Assembly: GCA_047495785.1 (NCBI GenBank)
Contig: JBLDXI010000024.1
Coordinates: 4,526,001-4,590,000 of the forward strand
From: Lepidodermella squamata
Taxonomy: Eukaryota > Animalia > Gastrotricha
Reading direction: 5' to 3'
Length of the DNA: 64,000 nt
The notes under the pieces were generated by a model that did not search any database, was not told where the DNA came from, and saw only the letters and a program-made list of their open reading frames with translations. Positions within the stretch are counted from its first letter, which is position 1. Every line of letters begins with the position of its first letter. Positions 26,501-63,307 of the stretch are shown here, piece by piece. A program made the position numbers and the translations under genes.

Positions 26501-29500
26501 TTACCCCACTGGGCAGTTGCATGAGCAAATGCCAATCGAATCACAGCAATCGAAACCTTCACAAAAATTGAATTTCAGCCTTGCCTTAGTCTTAACTCAG
26601 TCTTACATCTTTTTCCTTTGGCTGAACAGCCGAAAATGTCGACGACCATCGTTATTTTGGTATTGTAGTCCACTGGTATGATTTTCATCGCTTTTAGCTT
26701 CATAGGAGGACAGAACGTCTGAAGCGAAGGCGCAGTAGCATTCATCGGGCCGATGAAAAGCCTCGGAGACTGGTCGATTGCGGTATAGTAGTTGAAGGTA
26801 TACTCGTAGCCTGTATGCGACCACTGGACGTAGTAGGTTTTAATCCACTCGTCCTTGTTCGTGGGATCATTGCTGCCCGCCATTACAAGACCCGTGACAA
26901 CCTTCAGAATTGCAAATTCGATTTTCCAGAAGGATCGACCATCTTCGCTGAATCTTGGTGACCAGCCAATAGTTATGGTGTCTTTATTGTCCTGTTTTAA
27001 GCCATTGGCATCCGCTGGTGATCCACTATCGGCAGAAGTCACGTGGGCAATATATGGGAAATAGCTAGCTCCATCGAACAACTCATGCCAACAGTCACAC
27101 AGAGAAGTAACTAGAATACTGAGCCTGAAATCAAGTAAACAGGAAGCAATTCTAGGTTACATTTAGCCGTGCTAGCGCATCCCTTAACATCCGCGCGAAG
27201 AAAAGGCTTCACAGCATAGGATAGAATCCATATTGTCAACTCAGCAGCTTGAAGCCTTGGGCATATCTCTTGAGAATTTCGCGCTGTTTCAGCCCCGTTT
27301 CCTGCGAAAATGATCGGGGCAAGTTTCGTCCAAAAAGCCGTTGATTTGTGGACATGGATCTGCAGCTCTTTCGAACTAGGAAGGGCGCGATAGCTGACGA
27401 TGTAGTTCAGTATGCGCCCAGAACCCTGAAGTCCCTCAGTTCCGATAGATCGGACGAAGATTGGGCCGTTTGAGAACTTGAACCTAACCCAGGCAGGATC
27501 AGCAGGGGTATTGGCGATCGATGGATCAGGGCACCATGCCAGGTTTGTCTGGGCCAGGTTGGACGGAGGGTATGAAACGGTGCCATCGGTGTATACAGAA
27601 CTGGCCTCATACCCACTGGCTGCAACATAAGAGCTTGAAATTACGCTTTCAGCACAAGCGGATGAATAAGTGCCAGCTGGAAAAATTCAAAATGTTGAGC
27701 GATGCGTCTTTTAATGCATTTTTAACAAACTTTTGCTGCATTTGATGGTGGGCGGCAGGGCTGCTTTCTCGCATAGGGCTATATCGCTATTCTGCATATC
27801 GATATCATTCATACCAATGCCGCAGTTCCACCAGAAATTGCCAACGATTTCATAGCTCCCGGCATAATCAGGTTGACCTTGTAGCCAATTGATATAGCCT
27901 GTATCGTTCATTCGAGTACCGTCGTCCATTTCCCAAAATTCGGGCTTCTGCGGAAAATCGTATATCTTCAAAAGTGACATTCCAACGTAGACTGGATCGC
28001 GCCAGTGCGTCAAGTATCTAGCGAATTTCGCCTCCATGGGATAGTTTGTCGCTACCAGGTACGAGTTAATGAATTCACATTGCTGCCGAGCACTGCGAAA
28101 CTTATGCCCACTGACAGTCCCAATTTTTTTGTAACACCTTCCGTTGAAAAAGTTCTGAATTATAGAAACATTTTACTGAAGTTCTTATTGAAAACATGCG
28201 TAAATACCCATCCAATGTCACACTCCAAGCAGGGCAAGGGCCGCTCGCAGATGAAAAACCCATTGATTGTGTTAGTGTCGACAGTAGTCCTGACTCTAAC
28301 TGAAGTACTGTTCCAGTAAAGATAGGCCCACTTATGGGTATTTTGAGGAAATCCGTCCGCCCAAAATGTAGAATCATTCGCTGCGCCAAACACTCCATTT
28401 GGGAAGGGCGCGTTGTTATCAAGATCCCAGTCTGATTCGCGAAAATAACATTTTCATTATAGATAACAAGAAGAATATTCCTACTTTCATCCGGATCGCC
28501 GACTTGAGAGATATCAGAAGAATCAGGCGTGCGACTCAATCGAAGACTGTTGTCTAAGCCAATCCAGATTGCAGAACCCGTCATAACACTGCTGCTCGAG
28601 CTGATAAATGCAACGAGCTGAGCGAACACTTTGGCATCGGTTATCGATACCAAGTTGAAAGTGTTGAAGGCGTCGTAACAATAACCTCGAGCGTCAAAGG
28701 GGTTAGATTTTGTGACGGAACTAATCAAAAAGATCTGTAGGATGCATATCAAAAACGCGAAAAAGATTTTACGTGACAAGTTTGTAGCAGCTTGAACCGA
28801 CAGATGTGAAGCCTTCTGGGCAAAGATCGGAGCAAGTTGCGGCTGAAGGCACCGTGCAGACAGGAATAGACTCGTCTTGACAATTACGGGTGTAGATGTA
28901 CATATTATTGTTGATTCGCGTGCAAGGCTGGTACCAATTGTTACCCCACGGCAGAGATGCGAGCCTGTTGTTGGGATAGCTTTCCCATGTAGATGGCTCA
29001 CCTTCCCATTTGTATGCCGCTGAGCCATAGAACAACAGTAATATAATTTACTCAATCCTCAATCGCTTACTTTTGTTTCTGAGGACTAAATCAATCCAGA
29101 AGCCCTCCTTTTGCAACTCGTTAATTGCTCGAGTCATTAGCTCGCTTTCGTAGCGTTGCATCAGCGTCAAAGGGCGAAGTCCGGCGGCCTGGCATTTGCT
29201 TACCATCTTAGGCCTATCACCTGTGTCGCTGAATAGCCAGACGCATTTGTTGGGCGCGACTCGATAGCCGGCGTTGAGTTTTGTAAGGCCAGAATCATCA
29301 GCTGGCGATTGGCACTCTGAAGAGTAGGAATGTGTTAACAAGTATTATACAGTGTGTCATTCGCTGCATACGCTTATTTTAGCGTAGCGAATTTTTCATG
29401 GTTACATATGATTTTGGGAGAGGCTTTAGTCGCTAAGTTTATGTGGTTTAGAGGATTTTGACGTAGCTATCAAAATGAGATAAGAGATAAAATTGATATT

Positions 29501-32500
29501 TCATGAAAGAACCTAGTGCGCGTTTATACATCGTAATAATATCTTTTCCCTCCCTCCAAAGTCGCAATTACGGAACATATATGAGATTGAGCAATGGAAA
29601 ATTGGTGAATATGAGCTTGAAAACATCATTTTCGCCTCTCGCATATGTTCGAAAATGCCACAAATGTGAAATGCACGTAGATCAGCGGTTCCCAAACTTT
29701 TTGACTCGTAGTAGTGTCCTATGAGAATGGCTCGTAGAACACCTTGCTAAATTGAATGAAATTTGGTTGGGAATGGATACAATTTTTTGAGCTACACATT
29801 GATTAGTCTTAACATTGATTTTGGATGGCAACTTATAGCTCGAAAGAGAAGAAATCTCAGGTGAAACTAAGCGCGCGAGCGAAGCTAGGAAATTTTGATA
29901 CTGAAAAACCACGTATAACTTCTTAAAAATGAGAAAATGGCTCGGGGTTTTTCCATTCATATTCCATTCCTTTTTTTTGAGCCACGTCAAAATCCTTTTA
30001 ATCACATAAACACAGCGACATCCAAAACCATGTTCAACAGTGGAAAAATGTATTATTGCATTGTATGTACATTGTATGTATATTGCAAACAATTTAGGAA
30101 ACACTGTACAAGTTATAAGCTTCTTACCCAGGCAAGACGTAGGCGTATTTGCATACTCGCAGATGAAACGAAATTTCGTAGAGGTGTCGAATGACGTGAT
30201 ATTTCCAGCAGGTCCACTTGTTACTGTTCTTGAGCTGTTGCAAAACGGAACTAGCAATTGATCGGCTTTGGAGAGAAGAGCGGCGTAACAGTCTGGCGTA
30301 GTAGGCCAAGTTGCGTCTCCGATAATCGATTCTGCGGAAAACATTAAAGAAGTTCGTTGTTCATTGTAGTTCGGCAATTAACTCACTGCTGAGCGCTTGG
30401 GTAGCATTGCTGAGCGAGTTTGGCCAAGACCAAATGCCGTAGGAATCTGAAATGCGGTCCATCAAATCGGCTGATTTTTTTGCTTACTTAAGGTCTTACT
30501 TAAAGATAATGAAGTCCAGTAATAAGGATCGACAGCTTTTTCATGGTTGACCAAGGCTTGCAGCTTATTTGACGTATCTGGGACAGCCAGATAGGCCCCT
30601 CTGCTGTAGCATTTCCAACTTGCATCAGCCCATGTTGCCCTAAAAAAGGATTATAAAATAAAGCGACTGCATAATGCCTTGACTTACGTTTGAGTGGAAA
30701 AGAAAACACAAGTGTCAGTTTTAGTCGAAGGGTCTGAATACCGCACAAAAGGACATTTACAGCATCCATCCTAAGAATTTTCCTTTTATCAGAGTACTGA
30801 TTCGTACGGAAAACTCACATCGACACATTCAGGAGGCGCTTGAGTTGTTACGGTAAGTGTCGCGCCGTTACCGTACCAACCATATTTCTGGCACAGAACC
30901 CTAGCAGTGAAGCCGGAGGACTTAGAAATCCACATACTCGATGTTTGATCCAGTGCGCCCGAATATAGCTCGTCGGCAGCGGGTCTGAAGGTGTAAGCAT
31001 ACATTGTTGAATCCAAGCTATCATATGGGTTTATATCCAAGGCGTCACTTGCGATGAAGTTGCTGGAACTCATCCACTTCCACACCGAATTGTCTGCGTA
31101 CAACCCAACGAAATACGGGTTGCCAGTGGACAATATATTGTTGTGATTGGCAGCAACGCGTAGCCACATCAGAGCACTCTCAGTGTTAGCTACAAACAGA
31201 TCTTTCCACCAATCATGGTGGCACCAATCTCGGCCGTTGCCTAGACTCGTTTCGCCCCAGCCTGGATTCTGGTAGCACATTTGACCCCACTTGTACCACC
31301 CGGCATCAGTTGGGCAGAACCAGCAGGCTGAAGAGACCTCGCAGATGTATCGAGCTGATTTGTTGAACATGTTATCACCGACTGGCAGGTACCATTGAGA
31401 GCGAGACTTGCTGTAAGATAAGTGGGCAATGTAGTTATTTGAACCATCGCTATACACTGTCGGGCGGGTTTGCCAGATGAGGTAACTCCATGGCGAGGGA
31501 GAGGGTGAAAATTGATTCGTGGAGATGTCGGTATTCACTATAGGACCAGTGCCATCCGACCAGTACCATCTACCATCGGGATCGCCACTATAACCATTGT
31601 ATCCGAAATTGGAATTTGGTTTCCTTCGAGATCGGCGGGCCCAGTCTTGCAAGCCAATGAAGTAGAATCTGTCAGTGTTCAATTTCTCGACACCTCCATT
31701 CATAATGAACTTGAATTCATCCAATGAGTTGAAATTCACAAAGGAAGCCCCGTTAGCAAGCTTGAATATAACAAACTTGGGATACACTAACGTAAAATGA
31801 GTTTACAACTTACGCAAGTTTTCAAGGCAATCATATAGGTTGTTGAATGGCTGTAACAGACAAGTTTTCTTAATTTAGATTTCAACATTAAAAGAAGTCT
31901 TACGGGGCCACCCAGTAACAAGCATCATAGCACTCGGAATATACATAGCCAGGCGGGCAAGTAGCTATATAAATAGAAGTCAAAGCGTGGGATCAAGCAG
32001 TTTTACGGACTTACGGGTGGTTGGGCACTTTGAGAATGAGCAGGTCTGTTGGTAACCATAAATTCCCGACATCTGACAAACCGCCTTGGCTGTATCCGTA
32101 CTTGAAGCCGCTGTCCATTGCGAGGCTGGTTGGTCACTAATTCCTGAGAAGCTATTCGATTTGCTTATAGAAGTGATCATATAGGCGTATGGAGCTGGTC
32201 CCGAAGATGAAGCCAAGTCGAAGGAATCTGAACCTGATACACCAGTCCCATCCGACCATTCGTAACCCCCTCCGCTAGCTGTTTCGAGCCCTATCCAGAT
32301 CTTAGTTCCGCTGGACATCAAACCAGCTTGAGCGGTTACCATTCGAACGTAGAGCGTGGTCATTTCAGTTTTTGGGTACCACAAATCAGCGTTAGCCTCT
32401 AGGTTGGTGCAAATAGCTTTCTTAGAGTCATAAGTGTCTTCGTCATCATCTGTCAGCCCCATGAAGCAATAAGTGCCGAATTTGAACCAACCAGTCGGAC

Positions 32501-35500
32501 AAATGGTACAAGCCGAATTGTACTCGCAAACGTACGAAGCTTGGTAGTTAAAATTGTTATCGCTCCCAACAGGAAGGTACCACAATGAATTTCTCGTATC
32601 CCATCGCAGGAATGTGATGTAAGGAGCACTGTTTTTGTCACCTGAAATCGTTGGCTGCTTCTCCCAAACCAAAAAGTCGTAGGGCTCGGAGCCGGAGACG
32701 AAAGATCCAGCGATTGAATCATAGGGAATCGGCGCCTCGGGAATGGTATCATCCTGCCATTTCCAAATTCCATCGGCATCGCCCTTGTAGCCGTTGATTC
32801 CGATTGCCAGATCGCCAGTGGACCTGCGGACCCAGTCCCCAAGGCCGATGAACCAATCTTTCTTCTTATCCAACAACGTCGTGACAAATCTGAACTCACT
32901 GCTCGTATTCAGGTTCACTAGAGTCGAGCCAGCTTTCACCTGGTCCAAAGAAATCGATACAACTGGATTAATATAAAATGTCTTTCAACTAACACAATCG
33001 GCAAGTGCATCCAGATAGCTTGCTGCATTGCTGCTCAAACGATAACTTGACGATCTTAGTTGGCTAGACAATTAGAATCTTACCTAACAACTTTGTAGCA
33101 CGAGTCAAAGCACGCCGAGTAGGTATAACCATCAGGACAAGTTGCTGTTGAGCAATTCAATAGATTCAATAGAAGAGATGTTAACTTCATGAAACTTACG
33201 AGTGATCGGGCACTTTTTGTAACATGCGTACTGAGTAGCGGCGGCGGACGCCACGACATCTCCCTCGCAAGCGATTTTCTGTGGTATTCAATTTGTTCAG
33301 AAATCCCGATGACTCATCAAAACTCACATTCCCACTATTGGAACACGGAGAGTCGTGCCAGCCGTCGAACATCATAGCAGCGCACTGGCTACCGGACTGA
33401 TCGTTAGGCTCTAGCCCACCTGCAAGCCTCCAGTTCACATGTAGTGGACTAGCCAGGACCTTACCAGCCGTATCCCAATAATAGTCGGCTAAAATAAAAG
33501 CTTAACAAGTAGTGAATAATGAGGCAAAGAAAAGCTTACAGTCCAAGTGGTTGTACCCAATCCAAGCTTGGTAACTCCAAATTCGCCACAAACTGTCGAA
33601 GCCGCTATAGTCAGAATTATACTTAGCATCGAGCCCCCACGCCCAATAGAAAGGTTCAAACTGCTGCCGTATGGTTGCCAGAAAGCCATCCTTGGCCTGG
33701 CAAATCTGCTCGGCCTTAAGTCGGTTTACATAATCATTCCCCCAGTTCCCGCCGGTCGAAACACCCGTCGAGTAGCATCTGTCAAAAATTCTCATGTTTT
33801 CGATCTTATTCCGGCTTGTGCCAGGTTTGCAAACAGGCATGTTCGAACACGGGTTCCGAATCATACAAACCATGGGCTGGAAACCCCACCAGTAGTCGAA
33901 GGTCCGCAGCAAAGGACGCTTTTTATGCTGAGAAAGAAAATTTTAGACAGGCTATTATCAGTGATCTTACTCACCGGAAGCATGCAGATGAACTCAATGT
34001 CGTAACGAGGCTCGCCACTGAACCATAGGGAGCTATCGATTTCAACTGGGGGATATGTGTGCCAGTACCATTTATTCTGCGAATGGTCCCGATATCCGCC
34101 AACCAATAGACAAATGTCATTCCATGTGTCTAGGTTCTTGTCTACAGGCTTCAAGTCCAACTGAATATTCAGCTCCGTCGCTAGCCACTTGATGAGGTTA
34201 GCCATTTTAGCCTGAGGGTCCCCTGACTCGAACGTGGCCAACGTAGCGCCGGCGTGAGTACAGGAAGCATAGGCGTTAAACGGCCGGGTTGTGTAATCAC
34301 CGAAATTCCACGACGAAGGCGTGTTGACTACGAAGTAGCAGTTGTTATCCTGCAGAAAGGTTCCACAAGGGCAACAGTTTTCTACAGTTTGGGCTGCGAA
34401 AGATAGAAATTCAGTAAAATAATCCTATCTCTATCTACAATTTCAAAATACGGGCTGAAGTGAATCCGGACGGATAAGCACTTGGGTCAAGGCTGAATTT
34501 TTTGTATACACTGTCGGCCGTCCAAGTTTTCGAATTCTGACTTGTGAAAGTTTGATGACCCGCGTAAGAGGTTGTATCGGCTGAAAAAAAGAATGGAATT
34601 ACTATCACTAGCAGGATCTTGATACTTACGAATAGTGCAGTCGTTGCCAGTCCAGCCAGTTGGGCAGTGGCATCTACAGAATTTTTATATTAAGAACGGA
34701 ATTCAAGCCTTCGATTTGAAGCTTACTGATTTCCTCCGCCCCATAAACACCAACCACCTTGAGAAATATTGTTAGCGATGTATCTAAGGAAATTCTTCAG
34801 GATTGATTACCATTAGAGCATGCTGGATGGCAAACAGCTGAAAGTAAGATAATAGTTGAGGGTTGCAAAAATGTTGGCAGATATCCACTAGCCTATTTCG
34901 CAACGAACGCCTCGCCAGTTGTACGAATTGCAGGTGCATTGGCTGCAAATTTGAAGCTCAGTTTCGCAGCTAGTAAATTTAGAGGAAAATCTTACTTGGG
35001 ACCGCTACAGTTGCCGCCATTTTGGCACCAATCATCTTGGCAGTACCCTGTTACAAAAATGCTGAAATTGTTACTTCGAACTCGTTCAGGTTCACTGACA
35101 TTGATCACAGGCGACGCCTTTCCAGAGAGTGTCGCACGTGCAGTTGTTGAGAGCTATGCAGGTTCCGTGGCTATTGCACTCGTTCGAAGATGGACACGAG
35201 GGCTGCGTACAGCTGGCACCCTTCCAACCGTATGCACACTGGCAAACCTCGGGTGTGACGCAAGTCCCCCCATTCGCGCAGCCAGCCGAGCATATTGCTG
35301 TAATATTCAAGATTTTACGAGATAATTTCGCAAAATTATCGAAAATTACGCGTTTGGCACTGAGCACCCTTCCATCCAGTCGGGCATTTGCATTTGTTCG
35401 GCGAGGTACAGTTGCCACCATTTTGGCACGATGGATTGCAAACAGCTGTTACGTTTCCAAAATAAGTCATGCTTGAGGATAGGAGGAAATATATCTAACG

Positions 35501-37135
35501 AATTGTGCAGAGTGTGCCGTTCCACTTTGCCGTATCGCATGTACACACGTTCGGTAAACTACAGACGCCGCCATTCTGGCAGCTCGGGTCGCAAACAGCT
35601 GGAAATTAGGATTATTCAATTCCCGATTAAATTCTGCAATGATATTACTTACCTGAGTCGCACAAAGTCCCGTTGTATCCCGATTGGCACGTACATCTAT
35701 CCGGCGCAGTACAGTTCCCTTTAACGCAAGCAGGGCTACAGATCGCTGTAAATGGAGTTTTTTCTGAGAAGATACTTCAGTTTTGATAGGGAAAGCTTAC
35801 GAGTATCACATGTTGGGCCGGTATAGCTGCTCGAGCACTTGCAAGTATTTGCCGAAATGCACGTCCCGCCATTGTTGCATGTCGAGGCACAAAGAGCTAA
35901 TAGCCAGTCGCCAATACAATTAACAGCGAGCAATAATTGTTCCACTGAACTTACGAGCTGGTGTTGTGGGTATTACTGTAAATAAAACAGAGCTAGGCTT
36001 AGATGAAACTACGTCATTTCAATCCCATCTTACGCGACTCGCAGTAACGGCCAGTGTATCCAGATGTGCATCTGCAAATCGTTTTACCCTGACACGTTCC
36101 GCCATTTCGACACGGGGCGTAACCATCCCCTTGCGGTGTGTTATCATCGCAAATATAACCAGCGGTTGCAGAAAGTTCTGTTCAGTCGGACAAAAAACGG
36201 TGTGCGAGAATTTAATACGTAATTCATGCAACTCTTAGCACGCTTAAAACCCCAGCCAGTGCAACAGAAATCAACCAATTAGCAGCAGGATAAAATTACA
36301 CCACATGACTTATTTCTGTCACTTGCGAGTTCACTATATCAGGAAGACATAGGTTAGGGGTAGTTTTTTACGCATTTACGGAACTTAATCCGAAAATGAA
36401 AGCCAGCAGGGACGGGTTTCATTTTTTACCCGCTTTTTCCCGGTTGCACCCGGTTTACTCGGTACCGACGCCCCTGAATTTCAAATATAAACCCTGGTCA
36501 GATTCCGGGCCCCCGATACCTTCTATTGAGGTGCCTTTTTCGCTAATGCCTAAAACAAGGTCGTGTATGGAAATATGTGTGCTGAAAATATTAAATTTCG
36601 TGTTACACTTTGATTTAAAGTTGATAGTGCGATGGAACGGCATCGCATAAAAATGCTTTTCAAGATAACTCCTAACGATCATTTTCTCCGCTTGGATCCG
36701 ATCATTATAAAGGTTTTCTCACAATTTAGGTAAATCGCCCGCAGTATAATTATTCTACACTTCGGAACACTAAGAAATCCTCGTAAAAAAAATAAGTTGA
36801 GCATTGAATCAAGCCCACGAGCCCCTATGAATTTATGCTCACGCTCGCAGTGCTTGCCACTAGTCGTGATTGGACATAGGCAGTATTGGTAGTGGACACA
36901 AGTGCCGCCATTTTCGCAGTTGTTATTTGAATCGCTTTGATCGCACACCGGAGGTGGTGGAGCACCCATGCCCATGCCCATGCCCATGCCCATTCCCATG
37001 CCCATTCCCATACCCATACCTTGACCTGATTCCGGACGATAATGCAATAAGCAGATATGTTAAAAGACAATGCCAACCGGTGACATGAGTGATTTCGGCA
37101 AACAAGAGTATTGACAGCAATACGCCAATCTTCAT
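20540..37135 (-). CDS. Giant, apparently secreted multidomain lectin (multi-exon): SP-(GM)9-EGFx~11-CTLx~10-F5/8Cx3-FReDx4-degenerate CCP-FReD-PAN-CCPx4; no TM detected
   Basis: Leader [20 protein letters not shown] (37135-37078), then phase-1 EGF exons; CTL exons 34390-27760 (WIGL/FIGL, EPN, QPD, FICE motifs); discoidin exons ~27620-25860; FReD ORFs 25671-24886, 24895-22622, 22448-; CCP repeats to ~20760. Tentative terminal exon SMQL* at 20553-20540 with AATAAA ~100 nt downstream. Both the 5' start and the 3' end are uncertain. Confidence 0.82.
21940..25671 (-). CDS. Gene C: five FReD domains
   Basis: ORFs 24886-25671, 22622-24895 and 20847-22448 contain repeated DC...YC.M..GGW(T/I)VIQRR...WLG...WW motifs. 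Confidence 0.92.
27760..34390 (-). CDS. Gene C: array of ~10 C-type lectin domains
   Basis: Repeated C-P-x-G-(W/F)...CY, (W/F)IGL, W.W.DG and (F/Y)(I/V)CE motifs; EPN near 33410 and QPD near 27870. Confidence 0.85.
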
Positions 37136-37238
37136 GAAGCTTCTATTATACTTGGATTTAACGCTATCAAACGGCCACTAGAAGTACTTTTGTGAATTAG
37201 AGCAAAAGGACGGCAGAATTAATATGTCAAATGCAGAT

Positions 37239-37410
37239 GAATTCCAATCGGTCAACTGGACACGTTTTATACTCATAGGTTGACAAAAGAGCTATTGTTT
37301 GGCAATATTTACTTTATTCACTAAGGTACGGGTATTATGGCCGACCATCGGCGTTTCCAAGTCGAGTAGAAGTCGACCTGGAGCGCGCCAAAAAACTTGC
37401 ATAATTAATT
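37239..37410 (-). promoter_or_regulatory. Putative promoter of 5' cassette C (TATA, forkhead-like and homeobox-like motifs)
   Basis: On the - strand: AATTAATTATGC, GTAAATATTGCCAAACAA, GAGTATAAAA and TTGACCGATTGGAATTC, in the same order as at 44629-44800. Confidence 0.6.
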
Positions 37411-37987
37411 CATAGCAAGTTACACTTTCTGATGTTCGGTTTCTTCGGACATTTTAACTGCAGGCTTGGCAAGTTCACTTATTCGCTGATATCCTTGAAA
37501 CATGAAACCCAATGCCATAAATTGACCCGGCCTTTAGATGATTTCAAGCAATAATTTTAAATAATCGGTGACTATTTCTATGCGAGAATTTATGAGATTC
37601 AATATGTGGTATTCCTTTTTCTTTTGTTCATTTGGTACATGTGAGAACCCCTTCCCATTGCTAATTAAGAAATTGCCAATCAAAATTACGTTACTCATCA
37701 CGAAGCGATAGGCGATAATTTGTTCCTCTTGTCGCCCTGAAATTGTCCTGTGGAAATTTGTCAACAATTGTGGCGCTCTATCATATGTTTGCCTACACAG
37801 ACAGACGTCAGGCTAACGCATAAATTATCGCTTTATCGCTCGGTATCGAACTTGCGTAGGATGAGAAAAGTTAAGACGAAGTATTTCCCATAAATCATTC
37901 AACGTCGAATTTTGCACGACGTGGGTGTTGTTCGGCGATTTTTCATTATCAATGTTTAGTATGTCGGGACGAAACGTATACGTCAGC

Positions 37988-38395
37988 CATAGAGAAAAAA
38001 TGACCAGAGTAAGCACTCAAGCTGAAATATTGATCTCCATTATTATAGAAGTGCGTTCTCAAAACGGATATCTCCGTTTTTTACCAAATTTTGCATGCCT
38101 ATAGAACGCGAGCTGCTCTTTCACGTGGTTTAAGATTTGAGGTGGGCAATTGCTGCTCAGTCTTGATCTCATCAAAATAATTAAAACCATAGTGAAAACG
38201 AGGGTTTTGTATCGTAGCAGCGGTTGGGTTGCCCACCTCAAATGTTATACCACGTGAAAGAGCAGCTCGCGCTCTATAGGCATGCACAATTTGGTAGAAA
38301 ACCGAGATATCCGTTTTTAGAAAGTCAACTTTGAATTAAAATAAGGATTTAGAAATTTTAGTTTGAGTGCTTTCTCTGGTCATTTTTTCTCTATG
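37988..38395. mobile_element. MITE, CATAGAG family, copy 2
   Basis: Highly similar to 19659-20078; 8-bp TSD acgtcagc at 37980-37987 and 38396-38403. Confidence 0.9.
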
Positions 38396-38513
38396 ACGTC
38401 AGCCTGGCCATGTTGCTTAATACCGAGGCGTTGTTTATTTCGTTGCTTCGTTATTTCGTAGTTTTTTCACTCATCGTTATCTCATACAAAAAAACTGACG
38501 AAAGAAATAAAAT

Positions 38514-38590
38514 GGGGTGTAAGAAGGATTCGAACCCGGGACCACTGGTTTTTGGCGCACAAGGCGAAACCACTGAGCGATAGCGCTGAG
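38514..38590 (-). pseudogene. Degenerate tRNA-like / tRNA-SINE head
   Basis: Reverse complement has A-box-like TATCGCTCAGTGG and B-box GGTCCCGGGTTCGAATCC, but the stems do not pair properly. Confidence 0.55.
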
Positions 38591-38675
38591 TCATGGTAGT
38601 CGTCCTCGTTCGGCATTTTTACATACTTAACGACGTTAGCGTTTTTTTCCGGTTGCAGATAGAAAGCCTCTTATT

Positions 38676-38745
38676 TTCTAGTGGCTCAAATCCATGGTCC
38701 TGATCATGAAGGTCCCGGGGTTCGAATCCTCTTCGATCCTGCCAT
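38676..38745 (+). pseudogene. Degenerate tRNA-like / tRNA-SINE head (divergent from the preceding one)
   Basis: A-box-like CTAGTGGCTCAAA and B-box GGTCCCGGGGTTCGAATCC. Confidence 0.5.
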
Positions 38746-38759
38746 ACGGAAGCATACGG

Positions 38760-38801
38760 AAAGCCCACTAGTTCTGCTTGTAAGCAGAACTAGTGGGCTT
38801 T
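38760..38801. repeat. Perfect 20-bp-arm hairpin
   Basis: aaagcccactagttctgctt-gt-aagcagaactagtgggcttt. Confidence 0.85.
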
Positions 38802-40604
38802 TTCCGGCCACAATATTATGACCCTGGGATTTTGTCTAGGCTTTTTGGGCTTTTAGGGCTTTTTTTGGTCTTGCGAACTGGGCTGTACGATACCCCCTGT
38901 TCTCCCGTTTCTCGTAGCACCTAGTCAGTCAATAGAATTCCCGCTGCTGTTAGCATTATAGCTCAATAGTTCGGAGCTTGGAAATGTATAGGTTCACTAA
39001 TCCATAGACTTAGTGATAATCCTAGGCCTTGTTTCACCCATTTTTTCTGCTTGAGACGCCAAAGAGAACAAGCCATCCTCTAAGCGTAATAACACACCAA
39101 TTATTTATATTCGATGTTATTTAAGGTGTTTAAAAATTGATGAGAATAACTTCTACACGCCTACAGCTATGATAACTAACACACAGCCCATTTGTCATGC
39201 ACAGACTAATCGAGCGGGAAAACGACAATAATGCATACATGCGGCATGCGGATGCCTGACGTTTTGGTTGAAAGATTTTATGTCGCAGCGTGTTATTGAA
39301 TTTAGCAGTGTGCGACTTTCAGGAGGGGGGGATGCAAGGCCAGACGACGAAATGAGAATTTATTCCCCTATTCTGTCAATTTTGGAAGGTTCGGGAGCGT
39401 GTTTTAGTTGGAAAATCTCTAAAATTGTCTCGCTTCGCGCGGTTATTAGCCGAAATAACTAGTAATTTTGGCAAATACAGCAAAAAACATTTTTGCATTC
39501 CTGGCAGCTCGAGGATCCAAGATCGCACCCTGGAATTTAGCATAACACGGAATCTAACTGGACGATACCGCATCCCTTCGATTACTAGGAAGTTTCGCCG
39601 TGCTACCTTTCATGAAGCCAAACGCAACACCTGTCAGCTCAATGGCTACACGTTATCGCATGACTTTGTCATGTTGCGTGTTTAGCGTATTTTGAGTATA
39701 AGGGCCGCGCGTCTCATTACCTCTCAATCACATCGTACTACCCGCTGCGATACCCTTGTTAACTTCTGAACACAATCTGAAACTAACTTCAGTTCACATT
39801 GGCCAAGTCAAGAAGTGACAGAATGGCCCGTGCGCCCGGCTCGCTGGGCAAACCGGTTCGGGAGAAGCGGGAGAAGGGGTAATACCACGGTGCTCTAACA
39901 GTTGGATCAAATCCCGCGTAGAATAACGGCCAAACACGATTGAAGGCCGCGCCTGGATGAATAATGGCCGCATTATGTTACCCATTTTACCCAAAACATA
40001 GGACGCCAAAACAGCAATATCGACAGAACAGCGAAAGACCCTCCCTAAACTGTTTACTTGATATTCGAAACGCTTCGCGAAGCACAGAAATGTTTTTTCC
40101 AAGGTGTATCAAAATCCAAGGTCAAACGGCAATAAATAAACTACGTGTGAAACTGGAAAAGGTCAAATTGCCGCTCTACTATCATCAATCTTGATTGATT
40201 ATTTTTCTACCATTTAATCTTCACCCACGTATTTCCAATTGATTGTGTCCGCCTGAGCAATTAATCAGAATAATTTCAGCTGAATTTACAGTAAAATATT
40301 GTACATTTTTAAAGAAACCGCAATCAAACTTGAGCTTATTAAATTTTGGCAGGAGCCCGTATTAATTTCTGGCGAAAAATAAGACGTAAATTTATCAGCA
40401 CTGCCACTTCTTCACATTTCTTAACAATTTCGAAATATATTGAAAATGTTGAATATAAATCCCCAACCTGATTTATGTGAGAGGTCGAGTAGGAGGTGAG
40501 AGAAATCAATATTATTATCGCTAACTGTCTGTAACGTCAGTAACGTCAGTCAACATTTCGCGACTGAATAACAGTGAACAAATTATAACAAATAATAAAT
40601 GATA

Positions 40605-41026
40605 TAAAGTTTCACTCAAGGGATCTTGGGCCAATTCAAGTTATAGCAAATTTGAGACTTCGAGCTGGTTGCTTCAAAACAAATAACTTTCAAAAATTTA
40701 AACTCAAGCTTTTGTACGTATCAAAGGCAATCTCTTGACGCCCCGAGACCCTAAGAAATGACACATGAGTAATGAGTATTCCGACATGCTGGCAATGGTT
40801 TGAGACAATAATATAAGTCCCATCGCGACACGATAATGTGGTCTAGAGGTATGCCATATAGGCACATACCCCCCAATATTAGCGAAATATGCGAGGCCGA
40901 GGCCCCCGTGAGGCTCAGTGAGGCTAAACACTGGCATAGTTGGCATAGGTGTTTTGAAGCAACCAGCTCGACGTCCCAAATTTGCTATAACTTGGATTGG
41001 CCCCAGATCCCTTGAGCGAAACTTTA
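40605..41026. mobile_element. MITE with ~75-bp terminal inverted repeats
   Basis: taaagtttcactcaagggatcttgggccaattcaagttatagcaaatttg...gctggttgcttcaaaac / gttttgaagcaaccagc...caaatttgctataacttggattggccccagatcccttgagcgaaacttta. Confidence 0.8.
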
Positions 41027-41599
41027 GGGGAAGAAACTGTTTCTCATGGGCTTTCGAACAGTGTAAGATATTTAGAAATCTGAGCCAAAATGACTGAGCA
41101 GCGTAGAAATAAAGTATGCTCAAAATTTATGCCCATACTGTATTTGAGATAGTCTTATGCAACCCAGACCTGACTTCATTTCCCGTCTTTCAATCTAAAA
41201 ACTCATCAAGTTTTTGAATATTTGAATATTTTGAATATAAAAAAAATAATCGTAAATCGCAGATTTTTAAATATCTTCAGGCATTTGTTGTTATTAAATA
41301 CCGTTCAGCGCGTATTTCGCACGTGCCGTAGTAGCCTAGGCTACTATTCGAGATAGGACTATGCCTCGACGAATTTCAATTTACCCAGGCTTCTAATCAA
41401 GAGTGAGTATATATTTCAGATTTCAGTAACCACCGTATCTAACAAATTTCAATGCAGCGCGCAACACATTTGCACGGGGCAGCAATTAAAACGGAAGTTA
41501 TATTCACGATGCACTTGGTAGTCTTTTCACATGCCAGATGATTAATGACCTTAGTGGAAATCATTCGCAGACGCGAGCCCCTGAAGAGTCAAAACTCAC

Positions 41600-41829
41600 G
41601 TTCGCAGTGCATGCCGCTAGTTGTGGTTGGGCATAAGCAATATTGATTGTTGACACATGTGCCGCCGTTTTCGCAATTGATGGAAACATTGCTTTGATCG
41701 CAGACCAGAGCAGCTGTAGCGAGTCAGTGAATTAGATCAGTGAGAAATTAAGATTCAAATCTCAACCCTTTCACGGCCAATTTGTTTATTTCTGCGAGAA
41801 AAAATATTAGACAGCATCTCTGGCAGCAT
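41600..41829 (-). pseudogene. 5' cassette B: intact EGF exon (41713-41600) with a degenerate leader exon
   Basis: The 114-nt phase-1/phase-1 exon encodes [37 protein letters not shown], a paralog of 37025-36843. The upstream leader-like LIFFLAEI is out of frame with the ATG at 41829. Confidence 0.65.
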
Positions 41830-41883
41830 TTTTCAATGGTCCTGGTCACGAGGTTGGAACCCGTTTGTCTCTAACTATCACCA

Positions 41884-42282
41884 TTAAGACATGAGACGTA
41901 CTATAGGACGCCGCGGCTTGCAGAAAATCAGAAAAAGCGTGATATTTTTAATGAGGTCCAAAGTCCAACTCGACCAATGAATCATCTCATTACACTTTTT
42001 GCAATCATCTCAAGCCTTTTTTTTGCTTAAGATCAACGAGATCAACACATCTTTACACAGCGTCACGCCGATCTTTTGCTGTAAAAGAATTCTGATCAGT
42101 TTTTAATTATTGACATTTAAAAAATTAAAATTTTATAAATTAAAATTTCTTTAATTTCGAAATTACTGGACTAAAATTTAATTCGTATGCACATTCCGAT
42201 ATGCACAGTCCGCGGCCTTCAAGAGGCCCTTGTAACGGGAGCTTCGAAGCCGCGGCGTCCTATAGTAGGTCTCATGCATTAA
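41884..42282. mobile_element. MITE flanked by TTAA
   Basis: IR catgagacgtactataggacgccgcggctt / aagccgcggcgtcctatagtaggtctcatg with ttaa 2 nt outside each end. Confidence 0.7.
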
Positions 42283-42538
42283 GAAAGTACAAAAAAGGCG
42301 CCGAAATCGCCCTTTCGGTCAAGCTGATTTCAGACGATTTTTGGAGCACCCTGATTTCAGATGCTTTCAGCACAGGACTTTCAGATCATAAATTACTCCC
42401 ATGAAGATCCTTAACATTCCCCATCACTTATATCCCCGAAAAGTTGTTTCTTAAATGAGTTTTCAAAGGTCAGCATTCAGATCAGATTTCATCTTTCCAC
42501 GCAATAGTTTGAAGCCCAAGAATCACGCACTCCGCCTG

Positions 42539-42713
42539 TACCGTATTTGCTCGTACTTAAGACTAGTCTTATGTTCAGGTTTTGGGTACATTTCGAAAAA
42601 ATGACCCTCCTGAACTAAAATCCGAATATAAGGTTGCACATAAAGTACTGCATGAATATTAGTACGCACACGAATAGAGGGAGTCAGCCTTATGTACGAG
42701 CAAAAATACGGTA
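42539..42713. mobile_element. Tc1/mariner(pogo)-type MITE
   Basis: taccgtatttgctcgtac / gtacgagcaaaaatacggta; TA-CCGTA termini as at 17356. Confidence 0.7.
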
Positions 42714-42788
42714 TAAATCTGGACCGATAGGGCGATTTCAACCACTTAACTGAAATATCAAGGCGCCGCCGTTAGTCTTTTGTCGAAA

Positions 42789-43566
42789 GAATTACCCTCA
42801 CTTGCGCATTTATCACTTGCGCATTTGAAAATTATCATTTGCGCATCAAATATTGATTTTACAGCCTGTTGTTCACCAGTTGATGAATTATTATGAATTT
42901 TTTTACAAATTTTTATTTGCGATGCTTGACGCAGTTATTACTCAATCAACGTGTTATTACCAAGTAATGACAAAAGTACAGAGCAAGTAAAAGAGTAAGG
43001 CCGAGCGAAAATCAAGCATTATTCTTCATTAGTCGTCGGCTGCAAGAGCCCTCGTCTTGGGCCCGTGTGCTGGGCGTATTTTGCCGTTCTGCCCGATGAA
43101 GCCTGCCAACTTGTCCAGGTGTTCATGGGCATTTGAGCATTGGCATTGGAATTTGAGATCTGTTCGAATTCATAGTGGAAGCAACAGACGTGGAGGACTT
43201 CGATGAAGCCCTGGATTCAGTTCTTGATGAAACCCTGGATTCAGTTCTTGATGAAGCTCGATTTTCCCTTGATTGGGCCGATTCCACCTCTAGAATTCTC
43301 GATTGCAGTTCACGAATCTGTTTCGTCTTCGGCGAAGTAATGTCTTCATCATCACGGTTGAAAACATCCAGAACTTCCTGATCTTCTTCATTCAAGGCAT
43401 TCTGTGCTGTCTAAACACACGCGTCTAACAGATGTGACACCTGCCAATCTTATTTTATAAAAATTTCATAATAATTCATCAACTGGTGAACAACAGGCTG
43501 TAAAATCAATATTTAATGCGCAAGTGATAAATGCGCAAGTGATAAATGCGCAAGTGAGGGTAACCC
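42789..43566. mobile_element. Non-autonomous DNA transposon (MULE/Merlin-like) with ~115-bp TIRs, 8-bp TSD and an internal coding remnant
   Basis: TIRs contain tandem cacttgcgcattta units; TSD tgtcgaaa at 42781-42788 and 43567-43574; internal - strand ORF 43395-43123 continues in a shifted frame as ...HEHLDKLAGFIGQNGKIRPAHGPKTRALAADD*. Confidence 0.8.
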
Positions 43567-43849
43567 TGTCGAAACCTGATAAAAACTGGCATGTTATTTT
43601 TTTGTCTGACCAGATAATAAAATGGGGTTACCTGAATATCAATTTGAAAAAAATTTCACACCTTGATTTTGAATTTTGAAACTGCCATATTTTAAAAACG
43701 GTGTAAGATAGCGGTCTGTTTGTTTCCCGTAGCCAACATCAAAAAGTGATATTGCCGTTAAGGGCGGTTAAAATTCAACAAACTGAATTAATTACAGTGT
43801 AGTCAAAATTCCGAAATCGTCCTTTTGCCGTGAAAGGGTTATTACTCAC

Positions 43850-44534
43850 CAGTTTCACAGTAGCGGCCACTATATCCCGATGTGCACGAGCATGCCGTTT
43901 TAGAACACGTGCCGCCATTTTGACAATCCGCGTAACACCACATGCCGGAAGTACCATCGTTGCATATGTAATTTGCAGTTCCCTCTTAAAAATAAAACCG
44001 AGATTGTTACAGCGGTGCTATCAATTGAGCTACTGATTTGAATCTAAAGCTTGCGGTTTGCTTCTATCAACTTGGGCCCTCCACAGTTCAAAAGACAGGC
44101 AATTCTATGCACCGAGTTCTTTGTTTTTGTTATATCGCTATTTCCTTGCAAAGCCGATTATCCTGCCCCAAATCACCCTGTTTTACGAGATTCACGCCAA
44201 TCTGTTACGTACCGTTATTGCAGTACACGCCATAGTGCGGACTTGTGCAAAAGCAATAATCGCCATTTATGCAGCTTCCTCCATTCTCACATTTTTTGTT
44301 GTTGTCGCTTTGATCGCAGACTGAATTGCTACCTCCACCACCTCCACCTCCACCACCACCACCACCACCGCAATAAGAGCCACCACCACCGCCACCACTT
44401 CCTCCGCCTCCACCAGGACCTTATTAACGCCGTTATGTAAAGAGAAGTTACATATTTTCAAATCAGTACTGACCGATGACATTAGTAACATGGGCACAAA
44501 TTAGTATCGAAAGCAATATACCAGAATTCATCAT
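43850..44534 (-). CDS. 5' cassette A: signal peptide + poly-Gly + two EGF exons (alternative 5' end of gene C, or a small secreted EGF protein)
   Basis: Exons 44534-44474 (MMNSGILLSILICAHVTNVI), 44419-44213 (GPGGGGGSGGGGGGSYC(G)nSNSVCDQSDNNKKCENGGSCINGDYCFCTSPHYGVYCNN) and 43984-43850 (EGTANYICNDGTSGMWCYADCQNGGTCSKTACSCTSGYSGRYCET); all junctions phase 1 with canonical GT/AG. Confidence 0.8.
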
Positions 44535-44628
44535 TATAGATATCAGCTCGACGCTTTCTAACGGCAAAACACGATCAACTGAAAGCGATGATAAGCAACT
44601 TCCGGCCAAAATGAAAGTGTCGACTGTA

Positions 44629-44800
44629 GAATTCTAATCGGTCAATCCGCCATTTTATACTCGTATTGAATTCAACCAATAAATATAAGTGCATTTGTTT
44701 GGCAATATTTACCTAATCAACAAGGATACGGCGAATGACCTGGCGGGCGCTAGGTATACTTAAGTCAAACTCGCTGGATAAAAAGGGAGCATAATTAATT
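44629..44800 (-). promoter_or_regulatory. Putative promoter of 5' cassette A
   Basis: Same four motifs, in the same order, as at 37239-37410, including GAGTATAAAA ~120-130 nt upstream of the ATG. Confidence 0.6.
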
Positions 44801-45595
44801 AATTAACTTTCTTGCGGACATTCTTGTTCCGGACTGTTTTCAGGCATTACGATGTTAGCTTTACTCAATTCAGCAACGCAACCGACATTGGATTCTTGCA
44901 GAGAAAAAGAAAAAGCCGACTGAATCTGTGATAAAATGGCAATTCTAGGTGTAACGCTTTTCTTGAAAAGCATCTTACTAGAGAGAAATCACTAAGTATA
45001 GGAACTGAATTTAAAATTCCCTTCTTCATTACAACAAAGACTCGTTTGCTGCATTAAAACGTTAGAGAAAAGTTATTTGCAATGCCTCCATGCCCAGACT
45101 TCATATTCCAGGCGAACGAATTCATGTCGATATGCCTTATCGTCGTTTTCGCAAGGTATCAACTGTGTCGTTGCTGTGTAAGCAGGCGTAAGGTAACGTC
45201 TGTGCTGTGTTAGTAAAAGCTTTATTCTTCCCAGTTTTAAAACATTTCTCCCAATGAAGAGCCGCCGGCCAACAACAAAAAACAGCAATATGTACTTAGA
45301 AACCCTTGTAATGCGACATGACGTTTAAAAATTGATGGGAATAAATAACATTATCGGGGCATTATTCACGTATGCTCTGCCCAGACGTTGATATCTAGAG
45401 GAAAATGGCGATTATGCATGCATGTATTTCTTAGCCTGACGTCTGGGTTGAGTAGCGTTTTTATCGAATTCCGCGATATAAAGAATCCCTCGAGTAATGA
45501 GAGGTGACACATGCGCAATGGCAACGAAATCAATTTCAATTATTTTTTAAAAAGAGCGCCTTCAAAAATGCATAGCCTGTTTTATTTTAGGACTA

Positions 45596-46764: not shown

Positions 46765-47259
46765 TCAAAAATGAAAATTATTATTGAACGCGCCAAAAAA
46801 ATAATTTTTATTTGCATCGATGTTTATTCGACTATTGGGTAATGCCGACTGGCGAACACGAGACAAAATGGGATTTTTGAGGAGGAAAATTGAAAAATAT
46901 AAGGAATATCTCCACCATGATTTTGATCGGTTTTCTGATAGATCGAAAGAAAAAGCAAAAAGCACCTTACCTGAGCTAACTCGAAATAATGCGCATAATA
47001 TAAACAGTTTGCGCGCACAGAAATATTGACTTGGTGTTAATAAATATCGAACTTGAATGAAAATTAGAAGAAATAAAAATTCACCAACAATTGTCGTAAG
47101 CTTGCCAGAATTTGTAGCGAAGGTGCGGAATGCTTGCCAATTGGCTTTGTTATAGTTTTGCAAGCAAAGCAATCCGAAATGCCCTAATGTGCATTCATCT
47201 TGGGCTGAAATGACTTGTAAAGCCGCGAGACAACAAATCAAGCAATACAAATCAGCCAT
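46765..47259 (-). CDS. Small secreted protein or truncated, degenerate C-type-lectin-like gene
   Basis: Signal peptide MADLYCLICCLAALQVISA, then QDECTLGHFGLLCLQ...W..FRTFATNSGKLTTIV (CTL-like N-terminus); plausible short exons follow; TATATA just upstream. Confidence 0.4.
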   Translation of the reverse strand: MADLYCLICCLAALQVISAQDECTLGHFGLLCLQNYNKANWQAFRTFATNSGKLTTIVGEFLFLLIFIQVRYLLTPSQYFCARKLFILCALFRVSSGKVLFAFSFDLSENRSKSWWRYSLYFSIFLLKNPILSRVRQSALPNSRINIDANKNYFFGAFNNNFHF

Positions 47260-48219
47260 ATCAGTAACTAGTATCTTCCATTATATATATATATGGAGTT
47301 TATAAACTGTCGACGATAAAGCTATTCCTTGTAAACAACTATTAGTATAGCGCCCGCCTTAAGAAGATTAACTTGTGATGATGCGCTTATAGCCACTATT
47401 GTTTTCTGGCCTCAGTGACTCAAAAGTGACTCAACTTTTAGTAATTAACGGGAAGTGAAAGAATAACGCGCAAGAGACGAAATTGCTGAAAAGCAGGTTT
47501 CCAAGTATGAAAACTAAGTAAAAATGGGAATAAATTGGGAATTTTGTCACGAAATACCAACAAATATTTATCAATATCGTAGAAGCTCGGTGTCACTAAC
47601 CAATGGTGTCTTGATGATCTGCGGCAAATCACTATTTTATTTACCAAAAATGTACATTCAAATATTTTTTTTCTCAGATAATTAAAGCACAATATTTGTT
47701 AAAGGTTACATGTGAACTTGGAACAATACATCAGGAATAAGGTCGTATAAGGTCGAATATGGAATCAGGAAAACAAGTTGAGTGATTTCATGAAAACGGC
47801 TGCAAATTTATATGATAATATAGAGGACTTTTTTGTATGAGGTCGGCCTCATGGTGAGGTGGCTAGAACTGATTTTGAAAATCTGATTTTGAAAAAATGT
47901 CAAAAATATAATTGAAAATGCTGACAATAATTGAAAATTAATCCTCATTTCTCTGAAGTCTAAACGATTTCACTGGTTGAAATTTTAAGAATATTTAATT
48001 CCTATTTGTGTCGAAAAGCGGGAACTGCGCGTTATTCAGCCGGAAGACTACTCTATACAGATCGGAAACAAGCGATCCTCCTATAGTAAATAAATTCACA
48101 CCAAAACGTGAAAAAGTGGGCACGCGATCTTCATTTTTATTCACTCATCGCGCGCCCTATCCGCCCATTTCAAATTTTTAATTATTTTCTAAAATTCCCA
48201 GAGAAAATGTTTCATTTCC

Positions 48220-48961: not shown

Positions 48962-49033
48962 GGGCCCGTTCGGGAATTGAACCCGAGACCTCTCGCACCC
49001 GAAGCGAGAATCATACCCCTAGACCAACGGGCC
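48962..49033 (-). tRNA. tRNA-Pro-CGG: tRNA-Pro (anticodon CGG)
   Basis: Reverse complement GGCCCGTTGGTCTAGGGGTATGATTCTCGCTTCGGGTGCGAGAGGTCTCGGGTTCAATTCCCGAACGGGCCC, followed by a T-rich terminator. Confidence 0.96.
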
Positions 49034-49557: not shown

Positions 49558-49639
49558 GTCGCTATGCCCGAGTGGTTAAGGGGTCTGACTAGAAATCAGA
49601 TGCGGTCTCCGCGCGTAGGTTCAAATCCTACTGGCGACG
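49558..49639 (+). tRNA. tRNA-Ser-AGA: tRNA-Ser (anticodon AGA)
   Basis: GTCGCTATGCCCGAGTGGTTAAGGGGTCTGACTAGAAATCAGATGCGGTCTCCGCGCGTAGGTTCAAATCCTACTGGCGACG; long variable arm; TTTTT terminator. Confidence 0.96.
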
Positions 49640-61800: not shown

Positions 61801-63307
61801 ATGTGTCATCTGATGACGCGCCGTGGAGTTATCGCAAGGATTCCAACGGAGTTCTCTACTCGGGCTGGTCTGCTGACTATAAAACCGGTGGCTACTACGT
61901 CGACCTACCTTCAAAAATGTGGAGGGCCAAGCAACTGGTAGCCAATCTGAAAGCTGGGAGATGGCTTGACAACTCAACTTCAGTCCTATTCGTCGATTTT
62001 ATCTTGTACAACTCACAAATCAATTTGTTTTTGACTGTGAAAGTCGTATTTGAGGCCCTGTCAGCCGGTGGGATGAACTACCACACGAGAGTTTACCCGC
62101 TACAACTGTACCAATACTCTGGGGCTAGTAGCATTTTGATCTTCATAATTCAAGGCATTTGGATAATACTGCTGATATCTGTGACTATCAAAGCTGTTTA
62201 TTCAATGAAAAAACATGGGCCTAAACAGCATTTGAAGGATGGTTGGAATGTATTGGAACTTGTCTCGATCGCCATAGCTTACGGCATTGTCGGTCTCTTC
62301 GTTGCGAGGATTTCTAGCATTATCAAAATGATCAATAGAATGCAGACTGATCGATCATCCCACACTAATCTCGACCTACTGGTCAATTGGGACGAAATAA
62401 TGGCTAACCTCTACGGCTTGACCTTCTTCATGACCATGATGCTGTTCTTCCGAAATCTGAAATTCAACAAATATTGGTGCATGTTTTTGGCTACTTTATC
62501 GAGGGGTAGGAATGACCTGCTTTCATTTATCATTGTGTTCACCATCATCACAATGATGTTCTCTGGCTTGGGCTATTTGACTCTTGGGGCAACTCAAACC
62601 GAGTTCAGATCGGTAACAGCTTCAATAATGACCCTACTGCAAAATGTGATCGGTGTAACTGGGACTTTGATCTCCCTCGGCACAAAGTCTCGGTTGATCA
62701 TGATCTACTGCATCGCCTACTCTTCGATCGTAATGTTTTTAGCTGTCCAGATTTTCATGACCATCATAACTGTGACGTATGATCATGTTACTGACGACGT
62801 TGAGCATAACACTAACTGGGACAAAGAGGTGTCGGAATACATGGTCAAGGAATTTAAGAAGTTGATAACCAGAAAGCAGTCTAAGGAAGATATAGGAATC
62901 GACCTGTTAGTTAATGACAGCTCCTTTCCCGAACGTAAGTATAACATTGATGTCTCAAAATTTTTTAACTAACCCTTACATTTGCAGTTGATGAAGCATT
63001 GAATCGGCTTTTGCAACGTGTCGACGCCGTTGCGAAGAATGCTCCACTCATCGAGGAGGATAAACGAGTTGCGTGTAACATCCGCTGGGCCGAGCAGTAT
63101 CTCAGCCTATCGCGCGCAAAATCTGCGAAGCCCGATGTCCGACAACCCTCGGCAACATTCACTATAACGTCAGACGAAGTTGGAGCCCGGCGTCCTAAAA
63201 AGATTCCAAAACGAAGACCTTCAGTTGAACCCATCTTCACGGCAAGACTACCCGGTGGCTTCGCCTATTATGAGTTTCTCAGCCGGTTCAGTGAGCACAA
63301 CGTTTAA
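52879..63307 (+). CDS. Polycystin-1-like receptor/channel subunit B (multi-exon): SP-EGF-F5/8C-EGF-like-FReDx3-degenerate CCP-FReD-PAN-CCPx3-EGF-Thr-rich stalk-GAIN-like-TM1-PLAT-TM2-5-polycystin channel
   Basis: Leader MGIEILGFSLIFLFTSRAVEG (52879-52942); phase-compatible exons. Membrane half is collinear with and strongly similar to gene A ([45 protein letters not shown]). Stop 63305-63307; AATAAA at ~63535. Confidence 0.9.

Follow-up and report, generated by a model that had tools for sequence, protein, structure and literature searches.

Paralogous promoter-plus-leader units at the 5′ end of a giant secreted EGF mosaic gene of the gastrotrich Lepidodermella squamata as candidate alternative starts

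Chelicerate sDscam genes carry 5′ cassettes that comprise a promoter and two to four exons, encoding a leader and one or two domains; their exons are frame-symmetric, which lets an exon be skipped or included several times with the frame kept, and the cassettes are used through promoter choice together with alternative splicing (PMC4835542). Clustered protocadherins and UGT1A represent another class, in which single large first exons without acceptors precede one constant exon (PMC1885805). In Arabis alpina PEP1, a partial and a full tandem copy give two overlapping full-length transcripts (PMC3527215), and tandem exon duplication can also yield alternative or mutually exclusive exons, as in Dscam1 (PMC8373072, for the class). 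Here, the 5′ region of a very large gene, termed gene C, was analysed in a 64,000-nt stretch of the genome of the gastrotrich Lepidodermella squamata (assembly GCA_047495785.1, contig JBLDXI010000024.1, positions 4,526,001 to 4,590,000; hereafter the window, with positions counted from its first nucleotide). A preliminary description of this DNA had proposed that three tandem leader-plus-EGF cassettes, A, B and C, supply gene C with variable first exons. Two of them, A and C, are indeed paralogous promoter-plus-leader units, while B is a lone internal exon; that gene C would obtain alternative N-termini via promoters A and C, as had been suggested, appears the most likely arrangement.

Two paralogous 5′ modules were identified on the minus strand, unit A (44731-43850) and unit C (37331-36034), which share a common anatomy consisting of a TATA promoter, a signal-peptide exon, an exon encoding a spacer and an EGF1-type domain, and an EGF2 exon. 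The promoter of unit A sits ~7.4 kb upstream of that of unit C. The first intron spans 54 nt in unit A and 52 nt in unit C, and the second 228 nt and 665 nt, respectively. Unit C leads straight into the EGF exon chain of gene C and thus constitutes its ordinary 5′ end. Downstream of the micro-exon G2 this chain is built of phase 1-1 exons separated by introns of 37-58 nt and reaches ~35100. Gene C encodes a very large secreted mosaic in which Pfam models recognise EGF repeats, C-type lectin domains, two discoidin domains, about five fibrinogen-related domains and sushi repeats; the EGF exons come first, and the C-type lectin, discoidin, fibrinogen-related and sushi domains follow further downstream, to below 20847. 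The coordinates and splice sites of all features are shown in Table 1.

Promoters A and C align over ~125 nt with a local score of 54, compared with a maximum of 29 for shuffled sequences. They share an exactly matching 18-mer that has just these two copies in the window, as well as the TATA block GAGTATAAAA and the exact 10-mer TTGACCGATT, and in both the TATA box lies ~120-130 nt upstream of the ATG exon. Among the tandem 5′ units, A and C alone were found to have a promoter of their own. An AATAAA hexamer (37313-37318, minus strand) lies directly upstream of the 18-mer of promoter C. An A-B transcript from upstream could be polyadenylated through it, or it may have arisen by chance; a scan of 8.8 kb (36000-44800) revealed five such hexamers.

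The signature VCDQS...CENGG.C, reported previously for all three cassettes, was confirmed on the minus strand in exons A2, B and C2, which constitute the EGF1-type exons. A 15-mer, GTNTGCGATCAAAGC, has three perfect copies in the window, all within these exons, and a fourth match with two mismatches at 16009, where chance would give about 0.6 matches in all and none of 100 shuffles gave four. The proposed paralogy between the second EGF exon of unit A and exon G1 also holds, with the start of A3 corrected from 43978 to 43984. The five EGF exons reach 20.9-22.7 bits with the best EGF-type model, i.e. about the gathering score (Pfam cut-offs of 21.5 bits for EGF, PF00008, and 22.1 bits for EGF_2, PF07974), and display the six-cysteine pattern. 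AG acceptors in phase 1 are present at A2, A3, B and C2. Unit A has two cysteines in addition to those of the EGF pattern: the Gly-rich spacer contributes one (SYC) and EGF2 the other (MWC). They might pair together or form an intermolecular disulfide; unit C contains no such cysteine. The spacers are coding microsatellites of differing kind: C2 (36959-37029) carries (ATGGGC)n, encoding Gly-Met, whose length may differ between alleles, and A2 (44330-44415) a Gly run of the (GGT)n type.

Divergence between the copies was evaluated by Nei-Gojobori counts of the proportions of synonymous (pS) and non-synonymous (pN) differences, with Fisher tests, over 35-98 aligned codons. Comparison of all three exons of A and C gave a pS of 0.685 and a pN of 0.287 (Fisher 4e-8), while values of 0.70 and 0.30 (Fisher ~1e-4) were obtained for EGF2 (A3 and G1) and of 0.647 and 0.119 (Fisher 3e-6) for EGF1 (B and C2), pN thus lying below pS by a factor of 2.4-5. 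At the nucleotide level, B and C2 are 78% identical and either is ~60% identical to A. That synonymous but not replacement sites approach saturation indicates that the duplications are old and that A and B have long been under purifying selection; on this moderate test, both would have spent most of the time since duplication under such selection. Neutral DNA would no longer align at this divergence, which lends weight to the promoter blocks and to an intronic 9-mer that still can be aligned, and it follows that the edges of detectable homology mark constraint rather than the original duplication breakpoints. The splice donors of unit A also appear to have been kept by selection. Paralogy, intact frames and splice sites and conserved promoter blocks are therefore observed together with purifying selection on A and B. 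These data bear on the possibility that A and B are dead leftovers of old duplications, untranscribed or non-productive. In favour of it, the only run found for this region is genomic DNA, the surrounding intervals are heavily invaded by transposable elements (TEs), and A3 carries an odd seventh cysteine. Neutral decay at this synonymous divergence would, however, have wrecked frames, cysteines, splice sites and promoter blocks, whereas the 134 codons of unit A and the 38 codons of B are open without stops or frameshifts, the promoter retains its exact 18-mer and pN remains well below pS, making decayed remnants highly improbable.

Exon B differs from the two units in its surroundings. A stop codon lies just before its acceptor and another three codons past its donor, and searches of both flanking intervals with blastn and tblastn for remnants of a promoter, a signal exon or an EGF2 exon revealed nothing above noise. 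The ATG at 41829, regarded previously as the start of a B leader, is in frame through a GTGAAA donor (41774) and a 61-nt intron, but the resulting 18-residue peptide lacks a hydrophobic core, and the non-coding DNA around it contains ~6.4 open combinations of an ATG with a phase-1 GT per 665 nt. Since no signal-like peptide is encoded and such combinations are common, B is not a leader cassette. A fourth leader had been suggested at 36306-36276 (donor GTTGAT); it is judged to be a chance open reading frame (ORF), one of eight candidates in the C2-G1 intron, where 0.42 hydrophobic leader candidates are expected for an intron of that length, and has neither a counterpart in unit A nor promoter homology. 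With an acceptor and a consensus donor, and without a usable start or signal peptide, B could function only inside a transcript begun upstream. The sole upstream leader with phase-1 donors is that of unit A, and B would thus be fed from the donors of A. Whichever reading holds, annotation is affected: any model of B requires A, and automated gene prediction is likely to overlook these exons or to join them wrongly.

The same observations weigh on a strict array, in which three or four leaders (A, B, C and that at 36306), each with its own start, would splice exclusively to the acceptor at 36177. All donors are of phase 1 and compatible with G1, and A and C do own promoters. The phase-1 gtgag donors attributed to every cassette were recovered as GTGAGT in A3 and B and GTGAGC in C2 (GTAAGA in G1), but phase is not diagnostic: every EGF exon in the 5′ chain of gene C is of phase 1-1, so that phase compatibility is uninformative. 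Moreover, B lacks a promoter, a start and a signal peptide that would be credible, the 36306 leader does not exceed chance expectation, and the cassettes are multi-exon; transcripts from upstream would also meet the acceptor of C2. Exclusive splicing to 36177 is therefore the least probable of the alternatives considered.

We favour the interpretation that gene C has two alternative starts, promoter A feeding the gene body via B, and give it about even chances. The 5′ end of gene C was duplicated long ago, and both copies of the module survive. The proximal promoter C would serve as the ordinary start, giving C1-C2-G1-G2 followed by the EGF chain, while transcripts of the distal promoter A would be spliced A1-A2-A3 and then to the lone internal exon B, which would join the gene body either at G1 or at C2 and then G1. 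Use of promoter A would leave the giant protein the same but change its signal peptide and add three EGF modules. The chain A1-A2-A3-B can be proposed with reasonable strength. The consensus GTGAGT donor of A3 would be needless for an ending by read-through, where a stop follows after two further codons, suggesting that this donor is used and that A3 joins B; likewise, the presence between A and C of a selected exon of internal type argues that promoter A transcripts are spliced in this order. We infer that promoter A fires, that A3 is joined to B and that B is joined to gene C. Downstream of B, the acceptors of C2 and G1 are the only recognisable ones in phase. All joined models are open in frame, and joining B to G1 recreates the junction codon of C2-G1, CAA (Gln).

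The 9-mer AGGGGCTCG has only two exact copies in the window, which fall in the introns after B and C2, and, together with the consensus donor, suggests that the donor of B is used. No complementary copy of AGGGGCTCG was identified that could provide B and C2 with docking or selector pairing at the RNA level. Exon choice could also be coupled to promoter choice, A transcripts using B and skipping C2, C transcripts using C2, and both joining G1, an extension that we regard as rather doubtful. Under such coupling, the N-terminal order would be EGF1-EGF2-EGF1(B)-EGF2 as against EGF1(C2)-EGF2, and the shared 9-mer may help in the choice.

Several points weigh against a route from promoter A into gene C. 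The introns required are 2136 nt between A3 and B and 4575 nt between B and C2 or 5422 nt between B and G1, compared with 37-58 nt in the EGF chain. AATAAA hexamers occur at 41790, 39364, 38439 and 37318, and transcripts might end between B and promoter C, in a short terminal exon or at a polyadenylation site. Run X1, the sole run found for 35950-41900 and 35100-37140, is genomic DNA, the selection tests rest on 35-98 codons, and the evidence was drawn from this one locus. Inserted DNA accounts for part of the intron lengths, as TIR-bounded insertions (TIR, terminal inverted repeat) make up at least ~1.2 kb of the first required intron and ~0.8 kb of the second, which holds further high-copy repeats.

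An alternative is that A and B form an independent small gene, encoding a secreted protein of ~170 residues with a signal, a Gly-rich spacer and EGF1-EGF2-EGF1. Such a gene would end before promoter C, either in an unrecognised short 3′ exon or, with the intron after B retained, at a stop that follows three more codons, and would leave gene C with promoter C alone. In its favour, purifying selection acts on unit A, which is equipped with a conserved promoter and a signal peptide of its own; where introns usually measure ~55 nt, splicing over 4.6-5.4 kb and past an active promoter would be out of the ordinary, read-through past A3 or B stops within two to three codons, and AATAAA hexamers lie between B and promoter C. 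In contrast, no terminal exon of coding character was identified: as noted in the preliminary description, no cassette has a recognisable terminal exon of its own, and none that is plausible follows A3 or B, where ORFs are TE-derived or featureless. The consensus GTGAGT of B and the 9-mer shared with C2 also suggest donor use, and no small-protein relatives of this EGF1 type were found among 1.84 billion representative proteins, a search in which the profile of the three EGF1 exons retrieved generic multi-EGF matches only, with the VCDQS part poorly covered and no self match. A degenerate DNA pattern spanning CDQS to CENGG had no match in metagenome contigs, and neither of these searches turned up an annotated model or a close relative. 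A separate small gene, although somewhat unlikely, is the main rival explanation and a serious one.

If promoter A does feed gene C, the locus would exemplify a small and ancient duplication of a 5′ cassette that yields alternative secreted N-termini. It would do so in a giant candidate pattern-recognition protein, beyond the neuronal adhesion and detoxification genes in which such arrays are known, and would offer a simple two-state system for the coupling of promoter and exon choice in a genome whose introns are very short. If A and B are instead a separate gene, the locus would represent an ordinary partial duplication yielding a small EGF protein.

Over 35950-41900 (5,951 letters), X1 displays a depth of ~100 that is even over non-repeat introns and intergenic DNA, ~1% allelic single-nucleotide polymorphisms (SNPs), TE insertions and deletions and no splice joints; from this pattern of depth, SNPs and joints, it behaves as genomic DNA. 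Exons B, C1, C2 and G1 are present in the second haplotype or individual, with one listed exon difference, at 37095 (Glu/Gly in the signal region of C1). A 416-nt TIR-bounded element (37980-38395) is missing from the other allele; further differences are the replacement of 114 nt by 22 nt at 39330-39443 and the absence of 272 nt at 40405-40676. Depth over 37940-38536 is thousands-fold, compared with ~100 elsewhere, indicating a very abundant family resembling miniature inverted-repeat transposable elements. The inverted repeats of the insertions are 92-94% complementary, and a short 28-nt pair (I7) is 100% complementary. Zero depth was observed in the X1 contigs at 38736-39133. Just downstream on the minus strand (~38540-38740), tRNA-like T-arm motifs of the GGTTCGAATCC type occur in both orientations and suggest an insertion resembling a short interspersed nuclear element, although ARAGORN and Rfam gave no match at ~38540-38740. 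Rfam identified no family match over 35900-45000.

Table 1. Positions and properties of the 5′ units of gene C, exon B and the insertions between the units.
Feature	Position	Strand	Length (nt)	Description	Phase and splice sites
Promoter A	44731-44603	minus		18-mer 44712-44695; TATA GAGTATAAAA 44662-44653; TTGACCGATT 44645-44636	
Exon A1	44534-44474	minus	61	ATG and signal-like peptide, hydrophobic core ILLSILICA; paralogous to C1	phase-1 donor GTCAGT
Exon A2	44419-44213	minus	207	Gly-rich spacer with one Cys and EGF1-type domain; Pfam EGF 20.9 bits	phase 1-1; donor GTACGT
Exon A3	43984-43850	minus	135	EGF2-type, 7 Cys	phase 1-1; consensus donor GTGAGT
Exon B	41713-41600	minus	114	lone internal EGF1-type exon, six Cys	phase 1-1; acceptor ctacag; consensus donor GTGAGT
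9-mer AGGGGCTCG	41582-41574	minus		intronic, +18 of B donor	
9-mer AGGGGCTCG, second copy	36826-36818	minus		intronic, +17 of C2 donor	
Promoter C	37331-37211	minus		18-mer 37312-37295; TATA GAGTATAAAA 37274-37265; TTGACCGATT 37255-37246	
Exon C1	37135-37078	minus	58	ATG and signal-like peptide, hydrophobic core VLLSILLFA	phase-1 donor GTTGGC
Exon C2	37025-36843	minus	183	(Gly-Met)n/Pro spacer and EGF1-type domain; Pfam EGF 22 bits	phase 1-1; acceptor aatcag; donor GTGAGC
Exon G1	36177-36034	minus	144	EGF2-type, A3 paralog; first exon common to all models	phase 1-1; donor GTAAGA
Exon G2	35975-35955	minus	21	linker micro-exon (LIPTTPA)	
TIR-bounded insertion	42783-43572			A3-B interval; inverted repeats	
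TIR-bounded insertion	41884-42282			A3-B interval; inverted repeats	
TIR-bounded insertion	40605-41026			B-C interval; inverted repeats	
TIR-bounded insertion	37988-38395			B-C interval; inverted repeats	

Gene C (20847-36177, minus strand) is arranged head-to-head with a polycystin-like gene (52999-62972, plus strand), which contains EGF, discoidin-like, fibrinogen-related and sushi-like modules, as in gene C, followed by a PKD-channel exon. Three tRNA genes were identified, Arg-ACG (143-215), Pro-CGG (48962-49033) and Ser-AGA (49558-49639), two of which fall in the intergenic DNA that separates unit A from the polycystin-like gene. At 47082-47310 on the minus strand, a TATA-rich stretch precedes an ATG (47259) that opens a signal-like peptide (MADLYCLICCLAALQVISA...); this ORF, ~2.5 kb upstream of promoter A, reaches a phase-1 GTGAAT donor after ~58 codons. 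Neither a Pfam match nor a paralog within the window was found for it, and no exon that would continue it lies before unit A; it may represent either a chance ORF or an orphan first exon.

Comparison with the systems introduced above reveals partial likenesses. As in tandem exon duplications of the Dscam1 type, exon B has a paralog of equal phase in the EGF part of C2; the two end in the same junction codon at the 3′ side and have an element of the downstream intron in common. They differ from that class in being split by a promoter and a first exon, in the additional 69-nt spacer of C2 and in that no competing RNA pairing was found. As an evolutionary event, the duplication resembles that of PEP1, where a partial 5′ duplicate also lies upstream of a full copy and its promoter and first exon or exons can use downstream shared exons. 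The PEP1 duplication, however, is recent, concerns an intracellular MADS-box protein and has its transcripts shown, whereas the case of gene C is ancient, concerns a secreted protein and is read from DNA alone. With the clustered protocadherins and UGT1A, whose logic had been invoked for this locus, gene C shares a tandem arrangement of paralogous 5′ units upstream of a common body, every unit possessing a promoter and a donor. The parallel fails in the organisation of the units, which here comprise three exons rather than a single large one, with C2 having an internal acceptor of its own and B lacking a promoter.

In anatomy, the chelicerate sDscam 5′ cassettes constitute the closest known system. 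Transcription and joining of the cassettes are known there, while the evidence for gene C comes entirely from DNA. The two also differ in scale and composition, with two promoter-bearing units here compared with tens, EGF rather than Ig domains, the promoter-less exon B lying between the units, and an identity of ~60% between the units at the nucleotide level. Both systems nonetheless present a duplicated promoter, leader and domain exons upstream of constant exons, and the frame symmetry of the sDscam exons recurs in the phase 1-1 EGF exons of gene C.

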